Source: Rhodosorus marinus CCMP1338
Taxonomy: Eukaryota; Plantae; Rhodophyta
Assembly (NCBI GenBank): GCA_029953675.1
Contig: JAMWBK010000009.1
Span: forward strand, 496,001 to 560,000
Reading direction: 5' to 3'
Length of the DNA stretch: 64,000 bases
Within the stretch, counting starts at the first letter, position 1, and every line of letters starts with the position of its first letter. The notes beneath the pieces are model-generated. The model saw nothing but the letters and a program-made list of their open reading frames with translations, was not told the DNA's origin and ran no database searches. The translations under genes and the position numbers were made by a program. Below are positions 5,731 to 62,721 of this stretch, piece after piece.

Positions 5731-7835
5731 AAACATAAACAAGTCCAGTATCCTCCGAAAAAGACTCGGCCCCTTCGGCTGAAAGTCGTCCTCATAGTAT
5801 ACGTAGGTCGACGACATCTTCTCCGTTCACTAAAACCACAACAACAAACAACAGCAACCCAAAAGTCAATCTCACTCGCTTCTCGTCAGAAGCGAATTCC
5901 TTCAACTCACGAGGTCTTCCTCTTTACCTCAATTTCTCCCCAAAGGATCCTCTTATCTCCCCGAACCAATCTTGCCAAAGCTTTCCGTTACTATAGCAAA
6001 ATTCGATGCCGGGTCCTCTTGCTCAGTGACATAGCGAGTCTGAAGCAGATGGGGAAGGAGGGAAACGATCATTGGCAATTCCTAGCATAGAATCCGGACT
6101 TTTTCTGCTCTGAATAGTTCTCCTTGATTATCTGCTATCCTCAGTTCAGTGAATCGATATCTACTTTTCTTTTGTCCTGGAAAATAGTGATCCTGAGATG
6201 CTACGGGCATATCGCTCTTGTGCTCTTGCTGATTTCTGTCTGGGAGTACCGTGGGAGAGTAGATGAGTCTACAGGACACCTCTGTCGTACCAAGAGATCC
6301 GTCTAGCAGTGCTGGATCGTTGACACGACTAGCAACTGTTTTCTTTTCTTGTTTTCGCAAAGCTGAACCAATGAAAGCGAAGCTGGCGCGGAGATCGATC
6401 ACAACTGGGATATCAATCTTCCAGCAGATCAAACCTACGGGATCCCAAAAACAGGGCTTCTTCTAAACATCACCTTTCAAGAGGAACTGTTCTTCTCTCG
6501 ACAAACGCTGCCTAAAGCAAAGTTTCCCAACATTAACAGCCGTGGCGAGAAAGCAATTATCCCCCTTTGAAAGGCAAAAATTGATCGGGGGAGCCATCGA
6601 AGAACATACAGGAATCCATTCAATGCTCATCGCATGCAATACATCCATCAAACCTGCCTCTTCTCATCATCAGTCTCGTGAAGAGAGCCCCAAACTCCCA
6701 CTTCCATAGCAATGCGAACCCCTCCCGCCAACTACCTGAATTTGAAAAAGCTATTTGACTGAATGAGAATAATATTGACTGAATAAGATCTAAAATTTCC
6801 TCTGATCTACTCGGAAAAGTTGAAATTTCTTGAATATGGTATGACGCGTGGCTGGTAATTGTTGGTTGATAGTATTCGTATTTGATAGAGTTAATTAGTA
6901 TCCGGAAAATGCTTCGCATAACCCGATCTCTGCGTTTGGTGAAGCAACGGGTACGAACGCACCTCTAGGCAAGCTTCCTGCGCAACCACCCCGAGAGCCG
7001 AGAGGACTATGAATGACACAACGAACGCGCATCTAGAATATGGGCAACTGAGCTCAGCAAACAAAAAATGGTGCTTAAGCTAAGAGGAGACTGTACCCAC
7101 CGTTGTGCTAGTATAAAAGCCAGTACAACACAACCCATAAACAGGTGCGCGAACGTTTTGCGCAGTTGTGGTGTGGGTGCTTCGGGGATGAACCTCAATA
7201 TTTTCATGCTGTTTCCAGTTGCTTCTTAGCTTAAGCACTTTCTTTGCAGAGTTCAGTCGCACGTATTCTCGACTGGCGATCTTCGCATCGCAACCGTAGT
7301 TGAAAGCTCTCGCGTGTAGTGCGCCCTCTAAGAAACTCAACGGAGTCGCTCGAGCTAGCACATCCCATCGTATCATCGATGCCAATGGACGGACCTCCGG
7401 AAGATCCTTGAGGACTGCTCCAGTAGGCATACAATCACAGAGGACTTGGACTGGACCCCTATTTTGGCGTTTTGGGGGGGACGCGTGGTTTTCTAATATT
7501 GGCCTTAAAGGTTAGTATTTGATTAATTTCGGACAGGATTTCGGAGTCAGGAAGCGGATTTGGGTTAATTGTGATTGAAGGGGTTTCAATCCATTGGTGT
7601 CAGCCAAAGCGAAGGAGCAGGAGGTAGATAGACAGTGCAGGACTGAAGGGAAGGGGTCTCTGATTGTCGTGATTTGTAGGGCTGATACGGTTGTCGGGAT
7701 TGGGAGCATCTACTGAATGTCTGATCGCCTCAGTGCCTTTTTTTTCGGTCTTCCTGCGTATCTGCCGGTCACCATTTAGTTTAGTCTTAAAACGGCTTTG
7801 GAGAGGCCGAATCTGGGTCTCTCTGATTAACTATC

Positions 7836-26296: not shown

Positions 26297-27054
26297 GACG
26301 TAGGTTCTGATTGTCCATTCAACCATCGAACACAGCGCGGTGCCTTTGGAAGTAGTCGCCTTAGAAGGAGACACTGTCCATGTCTGTGCCACACGTAATT
26401 TTCATGCGTTTCTTCCTTTTCGGCAATTTCCGACTTTTCTGGATTGCTGGAACTGGTGAAAGAAGCAGATCCGTGAGGCTCACCATCCTGCGGGTTGAAT
26501 CTGTTGGTTTTGCTGCTTCAATCGAAAAACTCGTTCTTACAAAGATCCAGGTCTGACTATTCGTTTGTTCTGGATATTTTTGCTTTTGGTAATGGTCTGG
26601 CGAAAAGCTCTTATGCCGGGAGCATAGGGGCCTATAGCTCACTGCAGAAGAACAATCCTTTTAACTGTCCTGGAGGGCGAGGAAGTTTGCCAAAAACGCT
26701 AGAGCTCTGACAACCTAGACCTTGACACAGTTCGCGTTCTTGCTGCGAGAAACTACAAATGTTTGCATCTACTCCCGAATTGCAAGCAGAGTTGGTCTTC
26801 GAGTAAACTTGAATTCATCCGAAATGACGAAGAGTACTTCATGGTCTATGAGAGCGCGTATTGAAGCGCGTCGCACAGGATGCATTTTTGCTCCAGTTCC
26901 AAGGACAAGTAGCGACACGAGAAAAGTTACCCATGCCAAACATAATTCATGACGCATCAAGGAACATTCCGGTATGGTCTTGACAGACAAGTGGAAATAT
27001 TCTGCCCAATCTGCGCGAGCTTCGAACGACAGCTGGTATCTGCATCAATGAGAC

Positions 27055-27307
27055 TGTACGTCCTGACCGAACAAGTCAGCCGCCAGGAGTGTAGCCCAAA
27101 ACAAGGCAAATAATAGATAAGTCTAGGTCTAATAATAGTACTCTACAAACCCAAGACATGAACAGGCAGCCTATAAATACGGAAGTTACGACCTTCCGTC
27201 TTAGGATTAGAGCTAGAGGAGGAGTATCCAAGATAGAAAAAAGATAAAACAGAAGGGAATTTAAGGTTGTTTTGGATCACCTACACGTGTTAACGGAGAA
27301 CGTGTCA
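27055..27307 (+). repeat. 5' LTR of element 1 (253 bp)
   Basis: TG...CA ends and TATA-like CTATAAATAC; 7 substitutions and 4 indels versus 31545-31793 by manual alignment. Confidence 0.95.
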
Positions 27308-27309
27308 AG

Positions 27310-27322
27310 TGGTCTCATCGCA
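27310..27322 (+). promoter_or_regulatory. Primer-binding site TGGTCTCATCGCA
   Basis: Lies 2 nt after the LTR end and starts with TGG (complement of tRNA CCA); the identical 13-mer is at 37854 and 40178. Confidence 0.8.
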
Positions 27323-27861
27323 TGAGTTGCGATTGAGGAACGTGAATGAGCCCAAAACCTGAAAACCAGAAAACCAGAACATCAGAAAAAAAAACCGACA
27401 AACAGAAGATGGCATCGCTAACCCCACAACATACAATAGTTAAACGAAGAGCAGCAGTAGGAAACGCCGACACTGTTGCTGATAAAGGCGTTCGGGTTCG
27501 CTTCGGTGGAAACTTCACGGTTACAGGGCTCTTGAATGGGAAGAAGCAACCCCTCCTGGTCGATACCGGAAGTAGCCATTCTGTTCTGCGAGGCATCCCA
27601 GACGCCACTCCAATAATCCCGACTCAACACGGGAGATTGGACACCGCTGCCTCAGGAGCATCAATTGAGATTTTGGGTGAAGCGAACGTAACCTTACAGC
27701 TAGGTGATCACTACTTCGATTGGCAACCCTATATTGTGGAAGAAGCCGCTAGCCCGGGGTACTTAGGGAGAGATTTCCTGCAAAAATACAAAGCGCAGCT
27801 GAATCTACACAACCAGACCCTGACCCTAAACCCAGAAGAACGATCTCCTACATTCGAAAAA

Positions 27862-28020
27862 CCTGAAGAACCTGTAGAACCTGAAAACCCTGAAGAACCT
27901 GAAAACCCTGAAGAACCTGAAAACCCTGAAGAACCTGAAAACCCTGAAGAACCAGAAAACGAACCAGAAATTCAACCAGATGAAAACCCTGAAAATCCTG
28001 AAAATCCTGAAAATCCTGAA
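27862..28020 (+). repeat. 9/18-bp coding repeat (EPENPE)n between protease and RT
   Basis: Tandem CCTGAAAACCCTGAAGAA units, translated PEEPENPEEPEN... Confidence 0.9.
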
Positions 28021-29135
28021 AGATCCAAACGCGCCACTAAGGCGAACGAGTTGGATACCTGGAGTACATCAAGGTATGAATCGGTCTTCGCGGATAATAT
28101 TGAGACACTACCCCCTTGGAGAAAAGTGAATTTCACTATAGACCTGAAACCTGGAACGGAGCCAACTTCTCAACGACCTTACAGAATGAATCTTACGGAC
28201 CAGAAGGAGCTCAAACGACAACTCCAGGAGCTTTTGAACAACAAACTGATTCGGCCCAGTTCGTCGCCTTTTGCAGCCCCGTGCCTGTTCGTTGACAAGA
28301 AGGACGGTGGAAGAAGGCTATGCATTGACTACAGAAGGTTAAACTCCCAGACGATAGCCAACCAGACGAGCCCGCCGCGCATAGATGACTGCCTGGACGC
28401 CCTGGGATCAGCCACATACCTCAGTGTGATTGATCTCCGGAGTGGGTACTGGCAATTGCGGGTGAAGGACGAGGACATACCTAAAACGGCCTTCACCACA
28501 CCATTCGGCTTGTATGAATGGCTGGTGATGCCGTTTGGATTGACCAACGCACCGGCTGTATTTACCCGATTGCTCAACAACATATTCTTCGAAGAATTGA
28601 GTGAATTCGTCACGATTTTCTGTGACGACATCATAATCTACTCTACGAACGCGGAAGACCATAGGAGACACCTGGATACTGTCTTTTCAAAATTGAGAAA
28701 CAACAAATTATATACAAAGCGGTCAAAACGCGTTTTTGGTGTCCCCGAGACAAAATATTTGGGTCACCTCGTTGGAAGTGGGCAACGGAGACCGGACCCG
28801 GGCAAAGTAGCTGCTCTCAAGAATTGGCGAACCCCGGAGAATGTCCATGACGTAAGATCTTTTTTGGGATTTACTGGCTACCTACGCAACTATGTACCGG
28901 AATTCAGCCTTGTAGCAGCACCTTTGACCAATCAAACGAAGGAAAATGTGAACTTCCTATGGGGTCCTGAGCAGCAAGAAGCCTTTGACACCCTGCGGGA
29001 AAAAATGATGGCGCAGCCAGTCCTCCGAAACCCTGACTTCCAAAAAATGTTCATCGTACATACGGACGCGAGCAATCGAGGGCTGTCCTACCACAAAAAT
29101 TTAAAGACGGCGAACATCCAATCGCCTACTTTTCG

Positions 29136-30319
29136 AAGAAATTTTCGGACGCCGAAAAGCGATATTCAACGTATGAGCAGGAGCTTTATGCATTGACAAC
29201 TGCTATTCTCCACTGGCGTACGTACCTGGAGGGGACCAGATTCGTTGTTCGCACGGATCACAACCCATTGAGATTCTTACATTCACAGAAGGAACTTACG
29301 AAGCGGCAAGCCCGATATTTATATCGGTTAATGCCCTTTCAGTTCAATATCAACTATAAACAGGGCAAGGAGAATATTGCGGATGCGCTAAGTCGTCACG
29401 CCATACAACAACTAACAGTCGTTTCAGTTGTACCAAATCCAGAGTGGCGGCAAGCGTACCTGCAGGATCCGGCGTTCAGTGACATCTTCGAGCATCCGGA
29501 GCGATACCGGCAGCAAGGATTTGTTTGGCGAAATGACTCCTTGTATTTGCATAACCGAATCTGTGTTCCGGAAATCATGGTCACCGCTCTCCTCCAAAGT
29601 CACCATAAATGTCCCCCGATGGGTTTACCATAAATGTCCCCCAATGGGTTCACCATAAATGTCCCCCAATGGGTTCATTATGGTGACTTTGGAGGAGAGC
29701 GGTGACCATGATTTCCGGAACACATATTCGGTTATGCAAATACAAGGAGTCATTTCTCTCCTCCAAAGTCACCATAAATGTCCCCCGATGGGTTTACCAT
29801 AAATGTCCCCCAATGGGTTCACCATAAATGTCCCCCAATGGGTTCATTATGGTGACTTTGGAGGAGAGCGGTGACCATGATTTCCGGAACACATATTCGG
29901 TTATGCAAATACAAGGAGTCATTTCGCCAAACAAATCCTTGCTGCCGGTATCGCTCCGGATGCTCGAAGATGTCACTGAACGCCGGATCCTGCAGGTACG
30001 CTTGCCGCCACTCTGGATTTGGTACAACTGAAACGACTGTTAGTTGTTGTATGGCGTGACGACTTAGCGCATCCGCAATATTCTCCTTGCCCTGTTTATA
30101 GTTGATATTGAACTGAAAGGGCATTAACCGATATAAATATCGAGCTTGCCGCTTCGTAAGTTCCTTCTGTGAATGTAAGAATCTCAATGGGTTGTGATCC
30201 GTGCGAACAACGAATCTGGTCCCCTCCAGGTACGTACGCCAGTGGAGAATAGCAGTTGTCAATGCATAAAGCTCCTGCTCATACGTTGAATATCGCTTTT
30301 CGGCGTCCGAAAATTTCTT
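29136..30319. repeat. 473-bp inverted duplication (arms 29136-29608 and 29847-30319) with a complex junction
   Basis: The same RNase H/integrase-N protein is encoded on + (29193-29633) and - (29819-30262). The junction has 25-bp triplicated units and a 169-bp tandem duplication (29587-29755, 29756-29924). Confidence 0.95.
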
Positions 30320-31544
30320 GCAGGATATCGAGAAATTCTTAAGAACCTGCGAAGTTTGCCAGAGGCAAAAAGCACTCCGACACTCAGCGGGAAAGTTGAA
30401 CCCACTGCCTATTCCAGACGGGAAATTTCAATCCGTATCGATGGATTTTATTACTAACCTACCTGTGACACCGGACGGCCTCGACGCAATCTTCGTCATA
30501 GTGGACAGGTTCACAAAATATGCGCAATTCATCCCGACCACAACTAAGGTTACTGCGCGCGAAGCCTCCGAACTATTCCTACGCCATTGGATCCGTTTCG
30601 CAGGGGTGCCAAAAGACATCATCTCGGATCGCAACTCACGTTTCACTGGCATCTTCTGGAACCATCTAATGACGCTCCTGCAGGTAAAACAAAAGCTGAG
30701 TACTGCCTACCATCCACAATCAGACGGACAAACAGAAAGAACGAACCAGACCTTGGAAACGTACCTGCGATGTAATTCAACAACCACAACTTGGGCGGAC
30801 GACCTTCCTACGGCAGAGCTGGCCTACAACTGCCAAGTTTGAGAGTCTACGAAGTTCTCCCCCTTCGAGTTGCTTTACGGAAAGAACCCGATTTTACCTC
30901 CCGATCTTACAGTCCCGGATGCTAACGGCCCTTCATTGTCGTTACCTGAAGCCGCAACCATTATGTTACAACGACAACAAGACCAACAAGGTCTAGCCCG
31001 CGCCAACCTACGATATGCCCAAGAACGCCAACGCTTCTACTATGATCGAGGCAAAAGAGACCTCCACTTTGAACCAGGCGAATATGTGCTCTTGTCAACA
31101 CGGAATCTTCAACTCCCTGATTCAAAAGTTTTTCGGCCAAGATATGTTGGACCGTTTCGAATTTTACGCCAAATTGGTAACGTTGCGTATAAGCTGGAGC
31201 TCACGGGAGATTCTCAGATGCATGATGTTTTTCATGTATCACTATTACGAAAGTTCAATGGACCTGAACCTGAAGGCTCGCGCGTAGTTCCTGTACTACA
31301 ACCAGCAGTACCACAACGAGAGTTGAAGTCAGTTTTGGGACATCGACGAGACGAAAAGAACCTAAAAGATTACTTCGTCTACTTTGAAGGCGAGACAACG
31401 GATTATTTGAGATGGCTACCCTACCATCTACTACCGCAGAACCGGAATACCAAGAAACAAATCCGGTATTATACGAATCTCCACAAGGCAGCTTCTTCTG
31501 CCACCGGATAGTTCTTTCCTTCAGTAGTGTTAGTGTGGTTGAGT

Positions 31545-31793
31545 TGCTACGTCCTGACCGAACAAGTCAGGAGTGTAGCCCAAAACAAGGCTAATAATAG
31601 ATAAGTCTAGGTCTAATAATAGTACTCTAGCAAACCCAAGACATGAACCGGAAGCCTATAAATACGGAAGTTACGACCTTCCGTCTTAGGATTAGAGCTA
31701 GGGGAGGAGTATCCAAGATAAAAAAAAAGATAAAACAGAAGGGAATTTAAGGTTATTTTGGATCACCTACACGCGTTAACGGAGAACGTGTCA
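31545..31793 (+). repeat. 3' LTR of element 1 (249 bp)
   Basis: Direct repeat of 27055-27307, followed by the TSD GAGAC. Confidence 0.95.
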
Positions 31794-32006
31794 GAGACCT
31801 ACTCAACTTACAACTATGAACCGATCTTGCTCGTTGATGCTGGAAATCATCACGGGCTTGACTTTATCAACTTATCAACTTTATCAACATTCATGACGTC
31901 TCGAACAACTTCAGAAGTTCATCCAAACGTTAGCTCCTTAACTGTATCCAAAAATCGTAAACCGCGGCAAGACGAGGGTGGAAATACATTTCAAACGTTT
32001 CCGAGG

Positions 32007-33776
32007 TCAGCTACTCCACTTCGAAGGCCCCCTCGGAATCCATCTGACGATTGCATCGGGCACAGTCTTATACAATAAGCTTCCCAGCGGCTCGCGCAGG
32101 CCGAGCTTGTACAGCGCCTTTGGAAAGAGGAGAAGCAGCTTTGCGAGCGATGGATTCACGGTTTGCGTGTACGTAGAAGTGATGACACCGTTGACAACGA
32201 TATCACCGGACATCGTGTGCGGATTGTAAACTCCCTTCAGCTGCACCCTATGGACAGCTGTTACTGTGGTTAGATCGCCATTTGCCAGTGAAATCTCGTC
32301 GCCAACCTTCACGTCCTTCGCAGCAACAAGCTTATCGCCGACAACAAGATAGTGATTTGGACTAAGCTCAATGAAGTTCGTGCTCGTTTGAAGCCGCACA
32401 AACTTCCCGAATTCAGTGCTATCTCGGTGGGAGAATCCGAAGACGTCGCTGTACTCGCCGTGGCCCCCGAGGACTGTGTCCCCAGCCTCAAGTCCATCCA
32501 TCGCTTTCGTCGTTCCGTCCTCAAGCGTAACCACTGCATTCCCAGGGAAGCACGCAACCTCCTCCGGGTCCGGGTCGCACTGCTCCATCAGCGTCTCGCT
32601 TACAGACGGAAAATCGTTGATGAGTTGTTGATTGCCGCAGTTTTCAATTATAGGCGAAAGACAGCCCAAGGTGGTTTCCACACCCGCACAGCAGTCATCA
32701 CCCTGGTCGTTCATGACACATGACAAGTCGTTCTCTTCCATGCAAGCAAAGAACGCCTCTCTGTCACATTCATCAGATTCAGCGTACGTTAAGCTGCCCC
32801 CGAAGGTCGCCGCGGTCTCCTCGAGGAATTCAATATGACTGGCAGCTGACAGGGAGTTGTATCCTGACTCGGTTGATGAGTTGCATTCTCCGGTTTCTGA
32901 AAGTCAAAATTGATAATATCCCTGTTCTTAGCCACTCCTCTAGTACGATTCTGTTCTCAAAACTCTTCACAAATACGAACTGAAATGGAATCACTTACCT
33001 GATACGATCCTGACAAAACTCAAAACTCCAACGGAGTACGTCTCATCCAAATTGTCCCCGAGTACCAGTAGAGGACTACCAGAGTCTCCGGAGCAGGTAA
33101 CACCAGCCGTTCCGTCATGATCGCCGTCGGCACACACCAACCTGGAATCCGCGCTGGGCCCCTCCAGGAGATCGCATCCAGTTGCGGTAACAAGGATAGT
33201 GTCCAGCTCGCGCAGCACGATTGGATCCCGGTTATTGTTCGTGCTACCCCAACCAACAGAGGCGGAACTTGTCCAGGTAATTACGGGCAACGTGCTAAGC
33301 ATCAGCACCTTTCCGCCATCATCTAAAAGTGAGCTTGGCATCTTGATCATGCTTAAGTCGAAGCCGAGGACAAGCGTGAGGTTACCATCAACGTACTGCG
33401 GGTGGTTTTCATAGGCTTGGATTGGGCGGCAAGTGGACGAGTCAAATTCAAGACCAAAACATACGTAAAGATCATTCGGGTCCACATCATGAGTGCAGTG
33501 CGCGGCAGTCAGCACCAGGGTCTCATCGACGATAGCACCTGTGCAGAAGAAGAAAATGCCGAAATTCCCGGCGATCCCTATCTGTACCAACCACGGGTAT
33601 TCCGCCATGCTTGTCACTTCATTTCCGTTCACAATCTTCTGCGACGGAGTGAAAAAGTTTTTAATTGACATCTTAGCCGATACATCCTGAACCTGAACCC
33701 CGTCAACCAAGCCACCCAACACTCCAATCAAGGCAAGCAAAATCCCTATCAGGATCCGCTCACGTTCCACCACCAT
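32007..33776 (-). CDS. Secreted S1 (trypsin-family) serine protease fused to a Hedgehog-type Hint (Hog) domain, 2 exons, ~555 aa
   Basis: Exon 1 (33776-32999): signal peptide, QK|IVNG, TAAHC, DLSMI, GDSGSP. Phase-1 intron 32998-32897 (GTAAGT...TTTCAG). Exon 2 (32896-32007) stays in frame through a Cys-rich linker into A|CFPGNAVVTLEDGTTKAMDGLEAGDTVL...SPNH...GVYNPHTMSGDIVVNGVITSTY. Confidence 0.9.
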
Positions 33777-34976
33777 TATCAACACCCCACCCACCCCCCA
33801 ACCCCCAAACCCCTCAAAAACAAAAACCACAGGAAAACTTACAACTCCCTCACCCCCTCACTCCCTCACTCCTTCACTCTCTCCGTCACCTTCAAACACC
33901 TCCCCCTCCGGAATTCCCATCCACCAGACCATTACTAGCACTCCTTAAGTATCCATTCTGAAGATCCACCGCAGAACATGAAACCAACAACTTTTTCACA
34001 AACCCGAACATCCAGTACATAAAACAATCAAAAAACAAGATCTCGAATTCCACTGACAAATATTAGCATACCCCCTTTTCGCGAATGCAAAAGTTCAACC
34101 TGACTTCATTTTCGAACAAATCATTTCTGAAAAATGAAGTGGGTCCACGTCTTACGACGTAGATTTTAAAAGGGGGAGAGGGGGGGGAAGAGGTGAAGGA
34201 AAAGCCTGAACTTATTTATCTGAATGAGAATGGAATGCGTATTCTCATTCATAAATATCCGGTTTTGTTGAATTTATAAATAAAAAAGGATATTTTATTT
34301 GTGAATAGGAATGGAAAATAGGGAAACGGGGTTATCATTCATTATTTTGGTTGTCGGGTTCGGGTTTCTTCGAGGCGGAGGCGAAAGCGGAGGGTGAGAG
34401 GGAAAGTTGTTGGAGGTGGGAGATCTTGTGTGATTCTAGAGGCTCGCCAGTATTTCTTCACTTCAATAAACTAAAAAACCAAGCGGAAAAAACTTCGAGT
34501 GTGTGTGTGTACAGCCCCGACATTTGGATCTGTCCTCTTACTTTCGACCAGTAGACTTTAGATCGTTTTCCTAAACGTGAATGTGGTTGCCTTACCAGTG
34601 AAAAGCAAAAGAATCACGCCTTGGACTTCCAGTCGCGTTTCCATATGATGTTTTTCTTGCTGGTGAAGAGCGGTTTTTGCGGATGTGTCGTATGCTCAAC
34701 AAATTCTGCTGAGAATTGTTGAACCGGACCTTTTGATCTGCAACAAGAGGGACTGCAACTTTTTTGGAGAAAGCATGGGAGAGGAATGTCAAAGTTTGGT
34801 CCATGCATGTTGTGCGACTGAGAAATTTATCTCTCGCTAGCTGCGCGATTACTACAGTCAAGATTTCCGCAGTTATCGCCTCTCGCCGTGAAAGTTCAGA
34901 ACCACGTGGTCTTCGCTCGCATTTCTCCCTGAGCCTAAGAGGCCTGCGGCGACCCTTCCGATGTGGCAAGCAGAGG

Positions 34977-36842: not shown

Positions 36843-37579
36843 CTTTAGAGGACACCGCGATTTCAGAAAACACTGCCCGCACCCAGCGCAACCTCAGCAT
36901 TCACAGATCCACAGACAGTCCTCCACTCTCACTCGGAGCTTCAGTTGCTGCATACTGCAGCTCCCGATCCATAAATGCGCCAACCCTTCACACCACTATG
37001 AGAAGCAGCGCCGGCCAGTGTGCCAAGAACCCCGACAAAGCGATCCGCATGTTCAAAAGAGAGTAAATTATTTCAAAATTCACATCTGTACAACGGATTC
37101 ATTACTTTCTGTTGTGCAACCTCAACCCCTTTGATCCATCTAAAAACTTCAGATTTTCAGTCAGTCAGGAATCTTTGTGAAAGATTCATCGGCATTATTT
37201 GTTGGACAGCTGTCCACTGCTAGGCTAGATTAGCACGTTCCAAGTGTCAAGTGTCCACTTGGGTATTGACTCAATTTTTCCAGAATTCAAGGTTTGCTCC
37301 TTCCTAATTACTCCCTAATCAAGTAGTTTATCCCAAAACTAACTTTCCCTTTCTAACTCTGGTTCTTCTTCCTTACTTGTTTTCTTCTCTACTAGCTTCA
37401 AGCTAGGCTAACCTCAAAAGCATCGGGGGTTCCATCGTATTTATATCCTTCCGTCATCGGGATATGCGATACCGTCGAGACTAAAATAAGTGTTGTACCT
37501 CCATAGATTCTGGCACAGTCCGAGCATAATTTAGCTCAGCCGCATAGCTCTGTAAGGTTGAACTTGCTTGAAAGGCTGA

Positions 37580-39838
37580 CATGACACATGGTGACAAAAC
37601 AACTGGAGACAAATCTATACCCAGAGTACGAAAAAGAGTACAGATCAGGAATGACTGCAACACAAACTGCAGACAAATCAGAAGCATAAATAGGATTGAT
37701 CATGGGAAACTAGACTATAAATACGGACTCATTCGCATCCAGACCTGGATGAGAGAGAGAAAGGCATCGAAGATAAGAAAACATATAAGAAAAAATAAGG
37801 AATCGAAAAGTGTTTAGGATCAAAGACACCCGTTAACTACGAAGCTGTCGTTTTGGTCTCATCGCATGATGGTAAACCTGAACCCGAATGTCTTCACTAA
37901 TAAAAATCCAGGCCCCGCAGCCGATCTACAAGTGACATCGGATAGGCACGCCGAGCGGGAACGTCTGCAAGGGGAGTTGAAGGAGTTTGAACAGCAAGGT
38001 TTCATATCCCGAAGTCAGAGTCCATTTGCGGCACCAGTACTTTATGCTGGGATGGGGGGCGGCGCCTCTGTATCGACTACCGGCGGTTGAATAGCGTCAC
38101 TACTAGGGAGAGGACAACGCCACCGCGGATGGGCGAGCTGATAGTACTCTGAGCACCGCCCGGGTGTTCACTACGTTAGACTTGAGGTTGGGTTACTGGC
38201 AGCTTCCCATTGATCCGCCATCGAGAGAGAGAGGACAGCCTTCGTTACGTGTTTTGGACAATATCAGTGGAACGTCGTGCCGTTTGGATTTAAAAAAATG
38301 CGCCATCAGCGTTCATTCACTATTTGACGGATGTGTTGTATGACCTCATCAACAAATGCGTGGTGTTATACGTTGATGATATCCTCATCTACTCGGCGAC
38401 TCAGGAGGATCACGAGAGGGATGTCCAACGGGTCTTACGACGACTGGAGCAGCATCGACTGGTCGTCAAATACTCGAAATGCCAGTTCGGAGTACGTGAA
38501 GTTTGCTACCTGGGTCAAATATTGGCGGGAGGCACTCGCCGCCCCGACCCAAGGAAGGTGGGGACTATTCAGCGTTGGAAGGCCCCAACAACTATTAAAG
38601 AATTACGGGCGTTCATGGGATTCGCAAACTTTCCACGACCGTTTGTCCCTCACTTTGCGTCAATCGCTGCACCGCTCCACCCCCTAACGAAGAAAAACAA
38701 GTACTGGTTATGGCATCATGACGAACAGAAAGCGTTCGATACATTGAAAAAGGCGTCAGACACCGCCTTGCTATATATGGCTGATCCCACACTTCCGTTT
38801 ATTATTCAAACGGATGCCAGCGACACAGGAGTTGGGGGTATCCTCTTCCAAAAACAAGGCGACCAGGAGGTTCCAGTGGCATACATGTCGCGATCGTTCA
38901 ATGCAACGGAACTTCGCTACAGCACGTACGAGAAGGAGTTATATGCCATCGTACTGGCAGTACGACAATGGTCAATCTACCTGGATGGGCAACATTTCAC
39001 CGTGCGCACGGATCACAACCCGTTGTCTACGGCGTATCACCCTGAAACGGATGGGCAAACAGAACGCGTCAACCAGACCCTCCAGACTATGCTGAGATGC
39101 TGTTGTACGAGCCACACTTGGGTACAGAGTTTACCCCTGCTTCAACTGGCGTATAATAATCATACTTCAGCGAGTACCGGGTATTCACCATATTTCTTGT
39201 TAACAGGAGGGCACCCGCGGCTCAATTTGGACACCTCAACCCCTACTACTACGATTCATAATCTGGCCGATGCTGCTACTGGTTTCTCGCAACGTCAACA
39301 ACGAATCCTTGCTGACGCACGTAAATCCATGGCCCTGGCGCAGGAGTTGTACACGGAACAGGCAAATTCACGACTTCATGCCAAAATCTTCAATACCCTA
39401 GACATTGTTTATTTGTCAACGTGGAATCTATCCCTGGACGGCCCAACACGCTTTCAACCTCGATGGTTGGGTCCCTTCCCCATTACCGCTAAACATTCCG
39501 ATGTGGTTTATACCCTGCAGTTACCAGATGAGATGCGGATCCATCCAACATTCCACGTCTCATTGTTGAAAAGTGTACCACCTGCTACCACGGCGCCGGT
39601 GGTACACAGTGTACCTATCCAGTCACACCTACCCTCGACACAACCTATCCTCTCGATCTTAAACATGCGGAATACCGATGAGGAGCTTCGGGAATTCCTA
39701 TGCTACCGCGAACAGGAATGCTGGACCGATGCGACCTGGATCGCTGAACCGGACTACCCAACCGATCTCCAATCTCGGCGCCGACTCCGCCATTACCTCA
39801 ACTATCGGAAAGTACTCGATGCTCTGCCTGACGGCTGA
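37580..39838 (+). mobile_element. Degenerate Ty3/Gypsy element of a related family (element 3): LTR-like segment, PBS, RT-RNase H-truncated integrase-chromodomain; left boundary approximate
   Basis: CTATAAATACGGA at 37715 and a diverged LTR-end homolog at ~37810-37850; PBS at 37854; frameshifted RT N-terminus; ORF 38324-39838 with YVDD, TDASD and TDHNPL joined directly to STAYHPETDGQTER. Confidence 0.85.
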
Positions 39839-39922
39839 AGTTGAACACTTCAGTTTGTACCCAAACTCTGCGGGAGGAATGTGGGAACTCCCCGGACAGA
39901 CTGTATTGCTGGTAGTTGTTTC

Positions 39923-41173
39923 TGTTACGTCCTAACCGAACAAGTCAGCCGTCAGGTGTTTGGCCCAAAACAAGGCTAATAATAGATCAGTCTAAATCTA
40001 GTAATAGTACTCTAGCAAACCCAAGACATGAACCGCAAGCCTATAAATACGGAAGTTATGACCTTCCGTCTTAGGATTAGAGCTAGAGGAGAGTATGCAA
40101 GATAGATAAAAGACAACAAAAAGGGAATTTAAAACTATTTTGGATCACCGACACGCGTTAATGGAGAACGTGTCAAGTGGTCTCATCGCAAGAGTTACGA
40201 TTGAGGAACAAGAATGAGCCCAGAACCAGAAAACCTGAAAAACCAGAAAACCAGAAAACCAGAAAACCTGAGAACCTGAAGAACCTGGAAACCTGAAACC
40301 TGAACCCGAATGTCGTCGCTCATTAAGATCCAGGCCCCACAACCGAAAGCCTACGACGGGCGACGTGACGCCTTAATCATAAGTACGTTCTTGAATCACT
40401 TAAGAACGTACTTCAAACTGGCGCGACTACCCGACGACGATGACGACTACCGAATCACCTTGGCAGAAGGCTATCTCACGGGTGACGCCTCCTACTGGTG
40501 GTCACTACTTCCCAACCACCAGAGGCCAACGACATACGAAGGGTTCGAACAAACGCTCAAAGCCCAGTTCTACCCGGCGGACGCCAAGATCCGTGCGAAA
40601 CAGCAACTCGCACAGGCGCAGCAGAGAACGACTGTCTCAGCATATTCGGCATACTTCAATAAATGCCTGATCCAGGTCGGAGAAATCTATCGAACTTTCT
40701 CCGAGAAATCTATCGAACTTCTCCGAGTCCGAGATTTCTCCGACCTGGATCAGGCATTTATTGAAGTATGCCGAATATGCTGAGACAGTCGTTCTCTGCT
40801 GCGCCTGTGCGAGTTGCTGTTTCGCACGGATCTTGGCGTCCGCCGGGTAGAACTGGGCTTTGAGCGTTTGTTCGAACCCTTCGTATGTCGTTGGCCTCTG
40901 GTGGTTGGGAAGTAGTGACCACCAGTAGGAGGCGTCACCCGTGAGATAGCCTTCTGCCAAGGTGATTCGGTAGTCGTCATCGTCGTCTTTCTTTTATCTA
41001 TCTTGGATACCCTTCTCTAGCTCTAATCCTAAGACGGAAGGTCGTAACTTCCGTATTTATAGGCTTCCGGTTCATGTCCTGGGTTTGCTAGAGTACTATT
41101 ATTAGATCTAGACTTATCTATTATTAGCCTTGTTTGGGCTACACTCCCTGACTTGTTCGGTCAGGACGTGACA
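39923..41173. mobile_element. Palindromic (fold-back) derivative of the element-1 LTR family (element 2): LTR>PBS>gag fragment><gag fragment<partial LTR
   Basis: Full LTR 39923-40175 on +, PBS at 40178, gag from 40310, 256-bp perfect inverted arms 40433-40688 and 40732-40987, partial LTR 40988-41173 on -, direct GTTTC at 39918-39922 and 41174-41178. Confidence 0.9.
40310..40688 (+). pseudogene. Ty3/Gypsy gag N-terminal fragment
   Basis: PQPKAYDGRRD...GYLTGDASYWW...TYEGFEQTLKAQF...LAQAQQRTTVSAYSAYF, a retrotransposon gag pattern, truncated at the fold-back. Confidence 0.85.
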
Positions 41174-42454
41174 GTTTCACAATACTTTCATAGTACTTTC
41201 ATTCCCTATTTTTAGATTAAAAAAAAATTTTAGGTTGACGTTTAGCCTCCAACAATTCCTTTTAGGTTGCATCAGGTTATAGTTTACAGGAACCACAAGA
41301 CTGTATAAGACCTAGCTTTGCTAGATCTTGAGACCTAGAATTGAGCAAAGACACGTTGGTTGCAGTAGTTCTAACAGAGATGTCACATAAATCACAGCTG
41401 TCCTTCGTGTAGACAGGCTGTCCCAACTGGCTGGATCGTTGGTGGGGGGAACCTATTTGCAACTGTGCTGCGTCATGTCGGATGCGGTCAAGATCACCAT
41501 AGATCGGTACGCAAAGTGCATTAGTACGAACAGATTCAATCCCCCCGCAACGATTGAGGTTGCGTGACTGCCTGTTCTTGTCTTCGCATCTGATTAGTAC
41601 GGACGGTCCAGGCGGTCATTTGCCGTTGCCGGTAGTTGAAGAGAATGTGGAATTGGCGAATATCAAAGAAGCCTCATAGGGAACGCACTCGAGAGAATGA
41701 TCCATCATGACCGTGATTCCATTCCAACCGGTTGTTGTGGTGGTTAGGCCCACTATGGAGTCGATCGATTTCTTCTGGTTGGGGAGCGGCGCAGCTTGGG
41801 CAGGAAAATCCGATGGCACAATCCCTCTGTTGACCATAAGCTCTTTGTTCTTGTTAGAACATAATGGAATTGCGTAAGTGTTGCTCGACATCAGGTGTCA
41901 GCATAGGAGAGGTATGAATTTTTGGCCATGAGTTCTAGCTGTATAGAGGTTTTTGGCTGCCTGCGCACTAGCCTGTACAATCTATCTTGGTGAACGACTA
42001 CCGATGGATTCGATAGGGCAACAATGAGCATTTTTTGCTTGCAGGTGTTTCTCATAAATTTGCCTTCACCGAGAAACTTTGACACAGTTATTGCCATAGG
42101 CTTCGCCGTGATAGGGAGGTTTGTCGCTCATTTGAGACTCTATTGGTGGTCCGCGGTTAAACCCTGAGTGGGCGGAGGGCAAGGATCCGGCATTCACCGA
42201 AGTCTATACTATGCACCGCGACGCTCACGCAGTCTAGAACGCCTGAAGTTCAGGAATAATCTACGCTTTTGAACTAGTACATGCTAGAGCCCAGTGCATG
42301 CGGCAGCGGAGCCGCGCCAGAACCGTCGGCATGGCGCGGCAAGAGGTACACGAGGACTTTCATGAACATAACAAGGAAGCGGGATACAGTCATGTTCACA
42401 GAATCAGGTTAATTGTTCTTTCATATTTACTTTCCGAGTGGCCGCATCAAATAA

Positions 42455-43040
42455 TTACTCCGCCCCTTCCTCGTCCTGGTCATCTTCCGAAATGTTATAG
42501 TACCGCAGCTCATACTCGTTCTTACCAGTTGCTACTACTCTACACCAATCTCTCAGCGCCTGCTTCTTGAGATACTTCTTCGTAAGATATTTCAAGTATC
42601 TCTTTGAGAATGGAGAGTCCGCAACAACGATAATCTTGTTGTCTTCTCGCTCGATAATCACCGCATCACCAAGCTGCCCTACTTTACCGTTAATCTTTAT
42701 CCTATCGTGCAGGAACTTTTCCTGAACACAGGGGAAGCAAGACATGACCCATGCACATCACTCAGATAAACTGGCGCTGAAGATGCCTTGATCTAACTTC
42801 GACAAACTTACCAAAGACGCAGGCTCCATGAGCTCGTCGCCGACTGGTTCGGTACAGTCGATCGAGAACTTCAACTGCACCTTCTTCCCCTTGGAACCCT
42901 TCTATAAAACATCACGAACACCGAAACAACAGATCGTCAGAACCAGGCCCAAAAATCCACAAGAAAATTTCCCCCAAGAAACCAAGTCAACTCCAGACAA
43001 GGACAAGCCAAAGCTTTCGACACGCCCCACTTACCTTCAT
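42455..43040 (-). CDS. RPL22: 60S ribosomal protein L22e, 3 exons
   Basis: ATG AAG then GTAAGT at 43040-43029; [10 protein letters not shown]; [13 protein letters not shown]; [16 protein letters not shown]...LRDWCRVVA...YELRYYNI. Confidence 0.95.
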
Positions 43041-51434: not shown

Positions 51435-52209
51435 TCGACCTGTTTCCAATGTCTTTCTAGTGCACACGACTCATGCTGCTTCTCAGAGCAGATCGGGCCT
51501 AACCTTGCCGTTATTTGTGTTCACAACCTGACAGCTTCTTGCACAGGGTCAGACCATACTCGAGCGTGCCAGCGATGATAAAACCAAACAAAAAGCTGCT
51601 CATGAGCCGTCGTATCGATTGACCTACATTCATTGTTTCTAAAAGTATGTTCGGACCTGAAGGTGATAACCAAAATTTTTGGAGTGAAGAAAATAGTGTT
51701 CCCAAAGGAGTTGCGATGTCTTTTATTTGATGGAACCGTAGGAGCTACGAGCCGCAGTCTGCAGCTTTTCGAGGGTCGTCCCTTATCGTACCTGAACGTT
51801 CTTGCACCCTTTCCGGAGAAGGAGCTTATTACGGGGTCGAAAATTCGGCCGAAAAGGAAGCAGTAAACTTTCATATCGTCCTTTGCTTCGGATAACATTT
51901 AGCCTTTGGTTTTAAAAATATCCAAGTCTTACGGACAGAGGAGGTTAGGTGAAGCTCCGCAACTTTTTGAAGAGCTCTGTGATAAACGGTTTCTGCTCTC
52001 AAATATCTTCCGGAAGTTCACGAACTGGCACTTTTGCTCTGGAGGCCGTGACTGTGTCTCATGACCCCCTCGCGCGCTTCTACTCCTGGACATCCTCTCT
52101 TTGGATTTGAACTCTGAACTTTCGCATGTTTTGCTATATGAGCTCCTGAGGCGATATCTTCAGCTGGCACCGAACCCAGTTTACTACCGTTACTAGTGTA
52201 CTAGCAGTA

Positions 52210-52338
52210 GGGTTGTGCCATGTGGGTTGGGTTTTTCGCTGCTTCCCCCACCTCCCCCTTAAACCCACCTGTTTTCGCGGGTTTAACCACTTCTGGGTCG
52301 TAAACAATACGAAAAACCCAAACCACTTGGCACAAACC
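52210..52338. mobile_element. Mutator-like MITE, 129 bp
   Basis: 29-bp TIRs (52210-52238 and 52310-52338, 26/29 match, beginning GG), flanked by the direct 11-bp repeat TACTAGCAGTA (52199-52209 and 52339-52349). Confidence 0.8.
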
Positions 52339-53340
52339 TACTAGCAGTACTAGACTCTTCAGAACAGCGTGGGCGTCAGTCGAGACTGCTTAGGCAAAAC
52401 TCAGAAACATTACCATTGAATCATCGCGTCCCATTACATCCTCATGCGAGTCTATCACTGATGGGAAAAGATCTGAGTAAAGGCTGGACGCCAAAAGTCA
52501 AATCTGCATAGTTTAACTGAGCCCCTCATCAGTTCCGCGAGAGGAACTGGTACCCATGTACTACCCTCGAAGACAGCCGGCGTCAGGGCTTGTGCTCCAA
52601 ATCTCTCAACTCAGGCTCCGTGATGTGAGACCATGGTTTCTCATCGTTGACTCCATTGCTAAGTCACTCTCCACCTACTCGGGCCAATAATCATGTTTCA
52701 ACAATACGGCCTTTTAACCACCAGGGAAACGACGGGCTCGAAACAGGGGACTCTGGAGCCAGCGGGGTCGCATATGTCACGAAACCTTTATCATGAAGAG
52801 CGTCTTTGAGGTAATACGAGCCGACTGCTTCAGCATCTCAAGTGCCTTGCTTGAGCCATGCAGGCCCATGCCTTTTAATAGGTTCTTGAAGCCCCTTCGC
52901 GCGTCGCGATCCCCAACCGCAAACCACACCTTGAAATACAATAATATATTCAAAATTCATGATCCGCTTCCTCCAATTACAGCCAATTTTACTATATTTT
53001 ATCATTCATTCAATATTTTCAGTATCTGAATAATAGATGATATTATTCACCTAATCCAATAGACTCATATTTTTATTTTACGATAGCTGAGGAGAGTTTG
53101 ATTTATTTAAATATTTAAGATCTGCATCTATTTTATTTGCTATTACAGTATTATGTTATTTGAATATTATATGAATTTATAAAAATGTTCGAAGTTTCCG
53201 TTGGCGGAGGACTTTTTGGTTTTCAATACGGGGAAGTGAATCGATTGGTGGAGATGGACTAGTGCTTTGGTAGTGGGATAGTGTGGATGGAAGAGGGGGG
53301 TGTGAACAGGTTTGTAGAATAGATTTTATTGAAGGATCAG

Positions 53341-59104: not shown

Positions 59105-59286
59105 GGCTCTATCTCGCACCACCCAGTGGTACCTTTCCACCACGGCCGACGCAGGGTTAGCTCCGATTGCCCCCCTCTCCGCTTTTACTTTTACCCCACC
59201 AACGTAATGGCACTTAGGATATGCGGCAATCGAAGCTAAACTCTGCGTCGGCCGAGGTGGAAAGGTACCACGGGCGAGATGGAGCC
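59105..59286. other. Long imperfect intergenic inverted repeat (hairpin)
   Basis: Arms 59105-59171 and 59225-59286 pair with few mismatches and one bulge; 53-nt loop. Confidence 0.8.
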
Positions 59287-61285: not shown

Positions 61286-62721
61286 CTTCTACCGATTGTA
61301 CAAGACCGCGTCAAAGTCAGCTCCGGCCCTCCGCAGAATCCATGGCACTCCAGCTAGGCTTCTTCCGAACCTGTTCTTGGCGATTTGCTCAACTTTGGCA
61401 TCAACTTGACATGGAGTTCATCAGAAGCTCTCGCCTTGTCCCAGAGACTCGTTATGGGACATGATGTCCCACTACTTCTTTCCCATCGTTTGGCGCTGGG
61501 TTGGAACTCCCCCGGGCGTCAATGAGCGGCCCAAGGTCTTAGCCCATCTCTATGCAAAGTCACCTGAAGAAGCAAGGCAGCCAGAGGTGGAGCTATGTCA
61601 ATTGGACCCGGAACTTCACAGCTGGAGGTCCGTGAGGCCCCTGTGAAAGTTCGTGAGCCCTCCAGAAAAGAGATCAGAAAAATATACGGGCTCTGCCATT
61701 TTTCTCTCTCTTCAGACGTAGGCTTGGTCCCCGCTCCTCAACAGGTACCCCGACTCGTGCCTACATGATGGTGCAGCGCCGTGTTCGCCAAGGAGTCATC
61801 GGCTTAGACAACACCAGTTCGATTGTTAACGCTGCCCAGACGCTGTCAACAAGTGCATAGGGTTACTGACCACGCCGACGACGGACGGTCAGACTGATGT
61901 CTACGAATAGGTGCGTAAGGTCGAGATAGTCTTACCTTTGCCACGACGACCCAAAGCAAAGGATCCCGTGGCGGAACAGAGCATTTCTACTGGCTCAAGG
62001 TTTGAGACTTAAGTTCCTAATGGAGGTGGGCCTACACCTACAGAACCCGGCGGGCAAGTGAGAGAAGCCCGAGCGATGCTGAATCAACTATTGTGGAACG
62101 GGAATGCACTCGTGTCCACACAACCTCGGCGAAGCGGACTACCCGGTAGTCCCCATGGTAGAACGTAGCCACCCTAGCCACTAAGGCTTCACCAATAATG
62201 CATTGATAGTCTTCTTCACTTTTTAGGGGCTCCTTTAGGGAGTCCTTTAGTAAAGCGTCCACGGGTACGTCAATCTGGGACTTAAACTCTGAAAACAAAC
62301 GACCCAGAGATATTGATTCTCATCGATCAATGTTGATTTAGAGATCTTCTAACCCTCACGCGAACAAAAGGAAATGACCTAGAGCAGGATATACCTGTAA
62401 CCTCCCTAAGGTGTCTCCAGTGCCAAAGGTCGCCGGGATGAACCGCGCACTGAGTCTATGCCAAAGGCAGTCCAAACCAGACGCAGGGATATTACCGGCG
62501 ATCTTTGTCAGTGGAGACACTTTAGAGAGGTTACAGGTACATCGCACTCGAGGTCATTCCGCTTGTTCGGGTGTGAGATAGAACAGGTGAAAATCAACAG
62601 TATGTCTTTCTCGATTGTCTTGTTTTTTCCGTCATAAACCAGGTGCTTTACTTAAGATTCTCACTTGGGACAAGCGCTTGGTGATCGATCTTATCTTCCT
62701 GCATGTTCGTTCCTTAAAATT

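Follow-up and report, generated by a model that had tools for sequence, protein, structure and literature searches.

The fold-back and its parts

We analyzed a 64,000-nucleotide (nt) stretch of the genome of the unicellular red alga Rhodosorus marinus CCMP1338 (assembly GCA_029953675.1, contig JAMWBK010000009.1, positions 496,001 to 560,000; here called the window) and closely examined a rearranged copy of a long terminal repeat (LTR) retrotransposon at 39918-41179, here named the fold-back. The assembly was built with NextDenovo from native Nanopore reads and polished in three rounds with Illumina data using Pilon, with no whole-genome amplification in the workflow (PMC10250338). Read from left to right, the fold-back consists of the pentamer GTTTC, an LTR on the plus strand, a primer-binding site (PBS), gag, a turn, gag again in the backward direction, a partial LTR on the minus strand, and GTTTC once more. 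Its pieces derive from a Ty3/gypsy LTR retrotransposon family. Unlike an ordinary LTR copy, it has its LTRs in inverted orientation, with R-U5 missing from the right one and neither pol nor a polypurine tract (PPT) between them. The fold-back is a dead, one-off, rearranged Ty3/gypsy copy made of two 5' portions placed head to head.

The left half begins with GTTTC at 39918-39922, followed by a complete LTR of 253 nt on the plus strand (39923-40175; TGTTACG...GTGTCA) with a TATA box, CCTATAAATACGG, at ~40041-40053. Transcripts of related elements in other R. marinus strains (L001 and L003) start at the equivalent of LTR positions 180-186; we therefore place U3 at about positions 1-182 (~182 nt) and the beginning of R-U5 at ~40105. 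The PBS, TGGTCTCATCGCA, lies 2 nt (AG) past the LTR at 40178-40190, and the identical 13-mer stands behind the LTRs of two other elements of the window, the sibling element (27310-27322) and element U (~37856-37868), which are described below. A search of the window for tRNA genes found none, and an Rfam search of the window gave no match. Downstream of the PBS, a leader with 8- to 9-nt tandem repeats (AACCAGAA / AACCTGAA; repeat family D1) spans 40207-40297, and gag starts with an ATG at 40310 and keeps its frame through its first 126 codons until the turn (40310-40688, plus strand). The encoded protein matches the Pfam families Ty3_capsid (PF19259, 8e-10) and Retrotrans_gag (PF03732, 2e-9) and is 67-82% identical to other gag fragments of R. 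marinus.

At the center of the fold-back, a left arm on the plus strand (40433-40688) and a right arm carrying gag codons 42-126 on the minus strand (40732-40987) form a perfect inverted repeat of 256 nt, with 0 mismatches. Repeat analysis and translation resolved the 43 nt between them (40689-40731) into a 23-nt stutter and a 20-nt loop, the latter being the reverse complement of authentic gag. The motif GAGAAATCT ends the left arm at 40680-40688 and recurs at 40703-40711; its complement, AGATTTCTC, is found at 40732-40740, 20 nt past the second copy, and the two make up a 9-bp inverted repeat that encloses a 20-nt loop. The stutter is visible as a 21-nt unit (40677-40697) that occurs again at 40700-40720, at an offset of 23 nt. 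On the minus strand, translation of the right arm runs on in gag as ...QVGEISDSEKFDRFL (authentic ISDSEKFDRFL; ISDSEKFDRFV in homologues), whereas the left gag copy departs from gag directly behind GEI. Since only the right copy continues the authentic gag, the 20-nt loop is part of that copy in the sense orientation. This leaves two possibilities, a snap-back of that copy's sense strand or a switch of the left strand onto that copy.

The perfect arms contrast with the LTR pair, in which 14 of 186 positions differ as opposed to 0 of 256 in gag (Fisher p = 4e-6). The center is the product of copying, that is, of a fold-back, and not of the joining of two old copies, because a plain deletion between head-to-head copies would not make the arms identical. 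Furthermore, we computed that ~48 other 9-bp inverted matches are on offer in a 5-kb element, so that a symmetric joint would be unexpected from plain deletion between two copies.

The right half corresponds to an LTR-gag unit that lacks ~324 nt between the approximate position of the U3/R border and gag codon 42. At the gag/LTR joint (40987/40988), the right copy reads ...GATAAAAGAAA/GACGACG, the slash marking the joint. The LTR fragment behind it lies on the minus strand at ~40988-41174 and comprises LTR positions 1 to ~186-189 in the alignment, i.e., U3 with its TATA box and at most a few nt of R; it stops (positions 186-189) about at the inferred U3/R border. Its terminus, TGTCACG, faces outward, as does the left terminus, TGTTACG, and each abuts GTTTC, the right copy of which lies at 41175-41179 with host DNA thereafter. 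By chance, a matching 5-mer at this spacing is expected in ~0.1% of cases (0.13% of window positions). The two LTRs of the fold-back are 92.5% identical, with 14 substitutions (9 transitions and 5 transversions), one 6-nt gap, one 1-nt gap and a third gap of 1 nt at the junction end of the alignment. Within the LTR, the terminal inverted repeats AGGACGTGACA and AGAACGTGTCA match at 9/11 positions. The homology available at the three putative switch points is thus 9 bp at the turn, 0-3 nt at the gag/LTR joint and 9/11 at the LTR edge, the last without the chimeric end that a switch there predicts.

Most of this anatomy had been drawn in an earlier reading of the letters alone (here called the sequence-only reading). 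Its LTR-PBS-gag layout, the turn at a 9-bp inverted repeat 20 nt away, the 256 bp of gag copied backwards, the minus-strand LTR part of about 186 nt, the ~14 substitutions and 2 gaps between the LTR parts (two to three gaps in our alignment), the two U3 termini flanked by GTTTC, the chance of about 1/1000 for that match, the 5-bp length of the family's target-site duplication (TSD) and the 9/11 match of the LTR ends all reappeared in our analysis. The GAC microhomology that it placed between gag and the minus-strand LTR needs a narrower wording: the overlap amounts to 0-3 nt, depending on the bases of the parental LTR.

Neighboring elements and recurring fold-backs

The fold-back lies in a retroelement cluster of three elements in 15 kb. 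To its right, host DNA begins after the GTTTC at 41175-41179 and includes the gene for ribosomal protein eL22, of which an exon on the minus strand (42455-42745) encodes a sequence identical to KAJ8902202.1 of R. marinus. The structure is internal to a contig of 1.8 Mb, with unique host DNA (eL22) on its right and the non-repeated tail of element U on its left, and checks of its flanks found no match elsewhere in the window. The only genomic record found for the site was GCA_029953675.1 itself, in which 20.6 kb around the eL22 gene agree at 100% with window positions 32455-53052. Strains labeled R. marinus in MMETSP were too divergent to offer an empty site or another allele (eL22 protein 92% identical; related gag transcripts ~70-75% identical in DNA).

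A sibling element of the same family, recognized by its Pfam domains, LTRs and TSD, lies on the plus strand at 27055-31793 (27050-31798 with its TSD). Its LTRs are direct repeats, and it is flanked by GAGAC at 27050-27054 and 31794-31798, which confirms a TSD length of 5 bp for the family. Its open reading frames (ORFs) encode RVP, RVT_1, RT_RNaseH, rve and SH3_Tf2-1 domains in the order typical of Ty3/gypsy elements, and the integrase of the family, with its rve core domain, is a DDE-type enzyme. The gag gene of the sibling is deleted. In this gag-less element, the leader repeats (27346-27400; AACCAGAA / AACCTGAA type) are translated as protein, beginning MSPKPENQKTR..., and the linker between protease and reverse transcriptase (27850-28030) is filled by a similar PE(E/N)P repeat.

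The sibling contains a palindrome of its own at 29136-30319, in the RNase H/integrase region, with arms of 473 nt (29136-29608 and 29847-30319) that differ at 2 positions (29312/30143 and 29561/29894). Its 238-nt center zig-zags from sense to 79 nt of antisense (an inner inverted repeat), back to sense and again to antisense; 169 nt are directly duplicated there, and each turn has three copies of a 25-nt unit. Downstream, sense integrase resumes further along with loss of sequence, which brings the number of switches to at least four. The arms are less diverged than the LTRs of the same element (2/473 versus 7/245, p = 0.009), and by this comparison the palindrome appears to be younger than the LTRs.

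Inverted gag pieces were also seen in transcripts of related elements. In transcript L004 (R. marinus, JGI 3300017118), a fragment of gag (FEYTLKAQFY...) forms a zero-spacer palindrome in the leader (98-175), and the following gag segment is inverted directly behind codon ~80 (438-523). Transcript L001 runs from gag into a contiguous antisense segment of pol. Both transcripts may be chimeras of transcriptome assembly. Fold-backs appear to recur in this retroelement family, in the sibling palindrome and in the inverted pieces of L004 and L001. A palindrome inherited in common by the sibling and L001 was rejected, since the boundaries differ and L001 holds a contiguous antisense pol segment. Four of the six gag fragments break off within the same part of gag. 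Further family copies were sought with an LTR 21-mer scan of metagenome contigs (0 hits), with a single gag protein query (no confirmed locus) and by exact look-ups of the ORFs of the window (no record).

Element U (~37491-39838), directly upstream of the fold-back, is a distinct third Ty3/gypsy element with a 5' LTR of its own and no 3' LTR. Of its gag, about 14-17 codons are left, and the integrase core has been deleted; its pol is only 40-60% identical to that of the sibling, and its 5' LTR aligns with the family LTR only in the last ~120-160 nt plus the PBS, at ~70%. The left LTR of the fold-back starts 84 nt past the pol stop of element U. Moreover, traces of the U LTR or the family LTR were not found in either flank of the fold-back on either strand. 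On these grounds, we rejected as a simple explanation that the left LTR is the 3' LTR of element U. No GTTTC occurs near the start of the 5' LTR of element U, so there is no TSD around a composite of element U and the fold-back.

Origin of the fold-back

The two LTRs differ in their relation to those of the sibling. A four-way alignment counts 11 substitutions private to the left LTR against 3 private to the right LTR (p = 0.057), and identity to the sibling LTRs is ~90% for the left and ~96% for the right. As private changes should be equally numerous in sister LTRs of one insertion, the two LTRs of the fold-back do not seem to behave like such sisters.

Our preferred account, which we hold tentatively and at a little under even confidence, is that integrase joined two U3 ends, borne by either one head-to-head complementary DNA (cDNA) or two cDNAs, and that snap-back copying built the center. 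As the center shows, a DNA strand passing through gag made its turn at the 9-bp inverted repeat, a native feature of gag; after a single stutter, seen as the 23-nt repeat, it went on to copy the sense strand in reverse. For entry into the chromosome, the element's own integrase would have acted on the two U3 ends. With a single cDNA, the plus strand would have switched, inside the particle, onto a displaced and prematurely transferred plus strand and run off at the 5' end of the latter, which is U3 position 1. Concretely, plus-strand strong-stop DNA may have stalled at the U3/R border and transferred to gag codon 42 by homology of a few bases, after which it would have been extended and next displaced by the regular plus strand. 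The regular strand would then have switched onto the displaced one at GAGAAATCT and copied it back to its 5' end at U3 position 1. With two cDNAs, each would have provided one U3 end, and the inner ends would have been joined by snap-back repair synthesis.

No extra assumptions are needed for integration through two U3 ends to explain the intact U3 termini, the target duplication and the placing of one joint at the U3/R border. Both outer ends are indeed intact U3 termini beside an identical 5-mer, and the right LTR appears to stop about at the U3/R border, which is a landmark of reverse transcription and not of chromosomal replication. Two different templates would also account for LTRs that are 7.5% apart next to arms that are identical. 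By comparison, a template switch that returned exactly at the LTR edge would have had nothing beyond the 9/11 homeology to guide it. With regard to the enzymology, a terminal stretch of ~20 nt, from either U3 or U5, is all that integrase requires (PMC7240061). For human immunodeficiency virus (HIV) proviruses with asymmetric LTRs, it has been proposed that both RNA copies are reverse-transcribed, that the two minus strands of a particle are cross-used and that plus-strand DNA crosses from one to the other, and inversions make up a low percentage of HIV proviruses (PMC9278108). On a more general level, we consider it possible, though somewhat doubtful, that LTR-retrotransposon integrase can insert DNA with U3 ends on both sides in vivo; with the same reserve, such integration might yield inverted-LTR fold-back insertions with normal target duplications.

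Several points weigh against this preferred account. A literature search found no LTR element integrated in vivo through two U3 ends, and we know of no in vivo precedent for such an event. It requires several rare steps, namely, a premature plus-strand transfer, a switch onto the displaced strand, two templates and a U3/U3 integration. The U3/R border was inferred from transcripts of divergent strains and carries an uncertainty of ~5 nt, and the asymmetry of the LTRs reaches only the p = 0.057 given above, or p = 0.15 if three clustered changes are counted as one event. The left LTR sits, without a ready explanation, 84 nt past the pol stop of element U, so that the history of the locus may have been more complex. 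Moreover, as the sibling palindrome is younger than the LTRs around it, fold-backs can form, or be renewed, after insertion in this genome, and an origin after insertion is credible for the fold-back as well.

Such an origin, which we rate as rather unlikely, though second after the preferred account, would start from an old, ordinary element at GTTTC that was recently rearranged, in a single complex event, by template switching of a replication or repair polymerase. The polymerase would have turned at the 9-bp repeat in gag, run backwards for at least 256 nt and moved over to the 3' LTR of that element, entering at about position 188; it would then have copied this LTR backwards to its start and regained the normal template through the terminal inverted repeat (9/11). 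The original 5-bp duplication would have been kept, and the whole stretch between gag codon 127 and the 3' LTR would have been lost. Perfect arms beside LTRs that are 7.5% apart fit old sister LTRs with a recent fold-back, and the sibling provides a precedent for multiple switching (at least four switches, stutters and a downstream return) that is clearly younger than its LTRs. The terminal repeats of the LTR do match at 9/11, the C at position 4 of the right terminus (TGTCACG), which no other of the four U3 starts has, is the base found at the U5 end, and the left and right LTRs of the fold-back share 3 characters against the sibling pair. However, the exit would have to fall exactly at LTR position 1 and the landing exactly at the LTR edge, on weak 9/11 homeology and among thousands of microhomologies. 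A switch within the terminal inverted repeat predicts the end ...GTGTCA/GTTTC, but the actual end is ...GTGACA/GTTTC. This route also gives no reason for the position of the other joint at the U3/R border, and its expectation of equal private changes sits uneasily with the 11 versus 3 observed. Finally, a jump over several kb would be required, whereas the switches in the sibling are local.

The sequence-only reading had put forward both of these histories, i.e., a fold-back cDNA with two U3 ends integrated as a unit and template switches after insertion that flipped the 3' LTR in place. Its anatomy and both of its routes are sound; the flip-in-place step, however, has left no direct trace, the end being GTGACA and not GTGTCA. 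Its weighting, which favored switching after insertion or a cDNA origin with two templates, is close to the evidence, although we place the joining of two U3 ends above a rearrangement after insertion.

We regard as improbable that two elements inserted independently and in opposite orientations, within a few kb of each other, that their 5-bp targets matched by chance and that the DNA between them was later lost and the arms homogenized by fold-back or gene conversion. The retroelement cluster and the two LTRs, which look like different lineages, are in line with this history, and antisense neighboring or nested insertions are known, e.g., for EVD in Arabidopsis (PMC11624286). Since GTTTC and GAGAC both fit G-N3-C, a preference for such targets could raise the chance of a 5-mer match a few-fold. 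On the other hand, this match has a probability of ~0.1% by chance, the gag joint is symmetric within 20 nt despite ~48 equally long matches, and the 0/256 differences between the arms need an additional event given the LTR divergence of 7.5%.

An artifact of sequencing or assembly, i.e., a chimeric or fold-back read structure that entered the consensus, is very unlikely: a Nanopore-based assembly was used, and the artifacts known at read level include perfect palindromes, but this assembly rests on native, unamplified DNA, which makes an amplification artifact unlikely, and on NextDenovo followed by three Illumina polishing rounds; the structure is placed inside the 1.8-Mb contig between eL22 host DNA and the tail of element U; no palindrome continues beyond the arms, where the sequence passes into another, diverged LTR copy whose end falls exactly at the LTR terminus, next to the matching 5-mer; and the sibling palindrome has gathered 2 mismatches. 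By reasoning from the sequence, we also rejected a nested antisense insertion, an inversion between LTRs and autointegration circles, as the flanks or LTR orientations that they predict are not seen. The probability left over after the four weighed accounts was assigned to histories that we have not thought of.

Predicted activity and relation to known systems

The fold-back has retained a PBS and lacks both a PPT and a downstream sense R. Since PPT, 3' R-U5 and pol are all absent, it cannot be reverse-transcribed or transpose. No second copy with its internal joints was found in the window. A mobility like that of miniature inverted-repeat transposable elements (MITEs), which had been suggested together with integration as a unit, is unsupported: the joints occur once in the window, and PPT and 3' R are missing.

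The TATA box and the inferred start site are kept in both LTR fragments, so that both promoters point inward across the 256-bp inverted repeat. With its perfect arms and the 43-nt loop, the structure has a predicted folding energy of -574 kcal/mol (z = -70). Judged from this layout, either predicted transcript should contain a 256-bp hairpin, and the convergent transcripts should be complementary to each other. The fold-back should act as a source of hairpin RNA, i.e., of double-stranded RNA directed against its own family, and the predicted hairpin or duplex would feed small-RNA silencing of the family, provided that the alga possesses such a pathway. To our knowledge, the control of transposons in red algae is almost unstudied.

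Mu killer of maize, a natural inverted duplication of a partial MuDR transposon (PMC3440606), resembles the fold-back in that a partial 5' portion of a transposon including a terminal repeat is duplicated in inverted orientation. When transcribed, Mu killer yields a long hairpin that can silence its family (PMC3440606), a role that the fold-back might share. It differs in that MuDR is a DNA transposon and transcription of Mu killer reads through from a flanking gene, whereas the fold-back stems from an LTR retrotransposon and has its own promoters facing inward. A similar architecture of a hairpin or antisense trigger has been discussed for antisense-nested copies of EVD in Arabidopsis (PMC11624286). 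Defective HIV-1 proviruses likewise carry rearrangements that have been ascribed to template switching by reverse transcriptase, and they can have one LTR intact and the other partly deleted (PMC9278108), but they have one U3 and one U5 end with direct LTRs, and the fold-back has two U3 ends and inverted LTRs. LINE-1 (long interspersed element 1) copies inverted at their 5' end by twin priming are also truncated and partly inverted, with an ordinary TSD and microhomology at the internal joint, and their inversion arises during insertion since both target ends participate (PMC2837659). In contrast to the fold-back, they result from target-primed reverse transcription without LTRs or integrase, and their inversion contains no duplicated palindromic segment.

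Fold-back inversions of the type attributed to microhomology-mediated break-induced replication (MMBIR) share the turn at a short inverted repeat, the stutters, the backward copying and the return by microhomology, and the sibling palindrome fits them well. For the fold-back, however, an MMBIR-type route alone predicts neither intact termini beside a target duplication nor a joint at the U3/R border. DIRS-like retroelements also have inverted terminal repeats, but these are family-wide and go with a tyrosine recombinase and no TSD, whereas the family of the fold-back has a DDE integrase, normally direct LTRs and a 5-bp TSD. The rve integrase core and the 5-bp duplication in the family rule out a DIRS-like identity.

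The fold-back adds a variation on kinds of retroelement rearrangement that are already known, and its interest, which we grade as moderate, rests on the possible integration through two U3 ends and on the recurring fold-backs of its family. If it did enter the chromosome by two U3 ends, it would represent a new class of integrase product and offer a simple origin for transposon-derived hairpin loci, which are triggers of small-RNA silencing. Such copies would be born as hairpin loci with convergent promoters, and a side-product of replication would seed the silencing of its own family. If, instead, it was rearranged after insertion, the fold-back and the sibling would document frequent template switching in multiple steps, which is of interest for genome stability and not new in kind. 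Inverted-LTR copies go unseen by LTR finders, because these require direct repeats, and a genome-wide search for inverted-LTR pairs with TSDs would be worthwhile since standard annotation cannot detect them.

Two further observations concern other parts of the window. At 32007-33830 on the minus strand, adjoining ORFs encode a trypsin-like and a Hint domain, which the public annotation unites in one protein of 555 residues with this unusual domain pairing. Outside the retroelements, there are four single-copy, imperfect, hairpin-like inverted repeats (7064-7245, 52198-52350, 59123-59274 and 62373-62558) with arms of 30-64 nt that are 80-92% complementary and spacers of 58-122 nt. None of them matched an Rfam family, and they may represent products of old fold-back events, genes for small hairpin RNAs or relics of a MITE-like kind.

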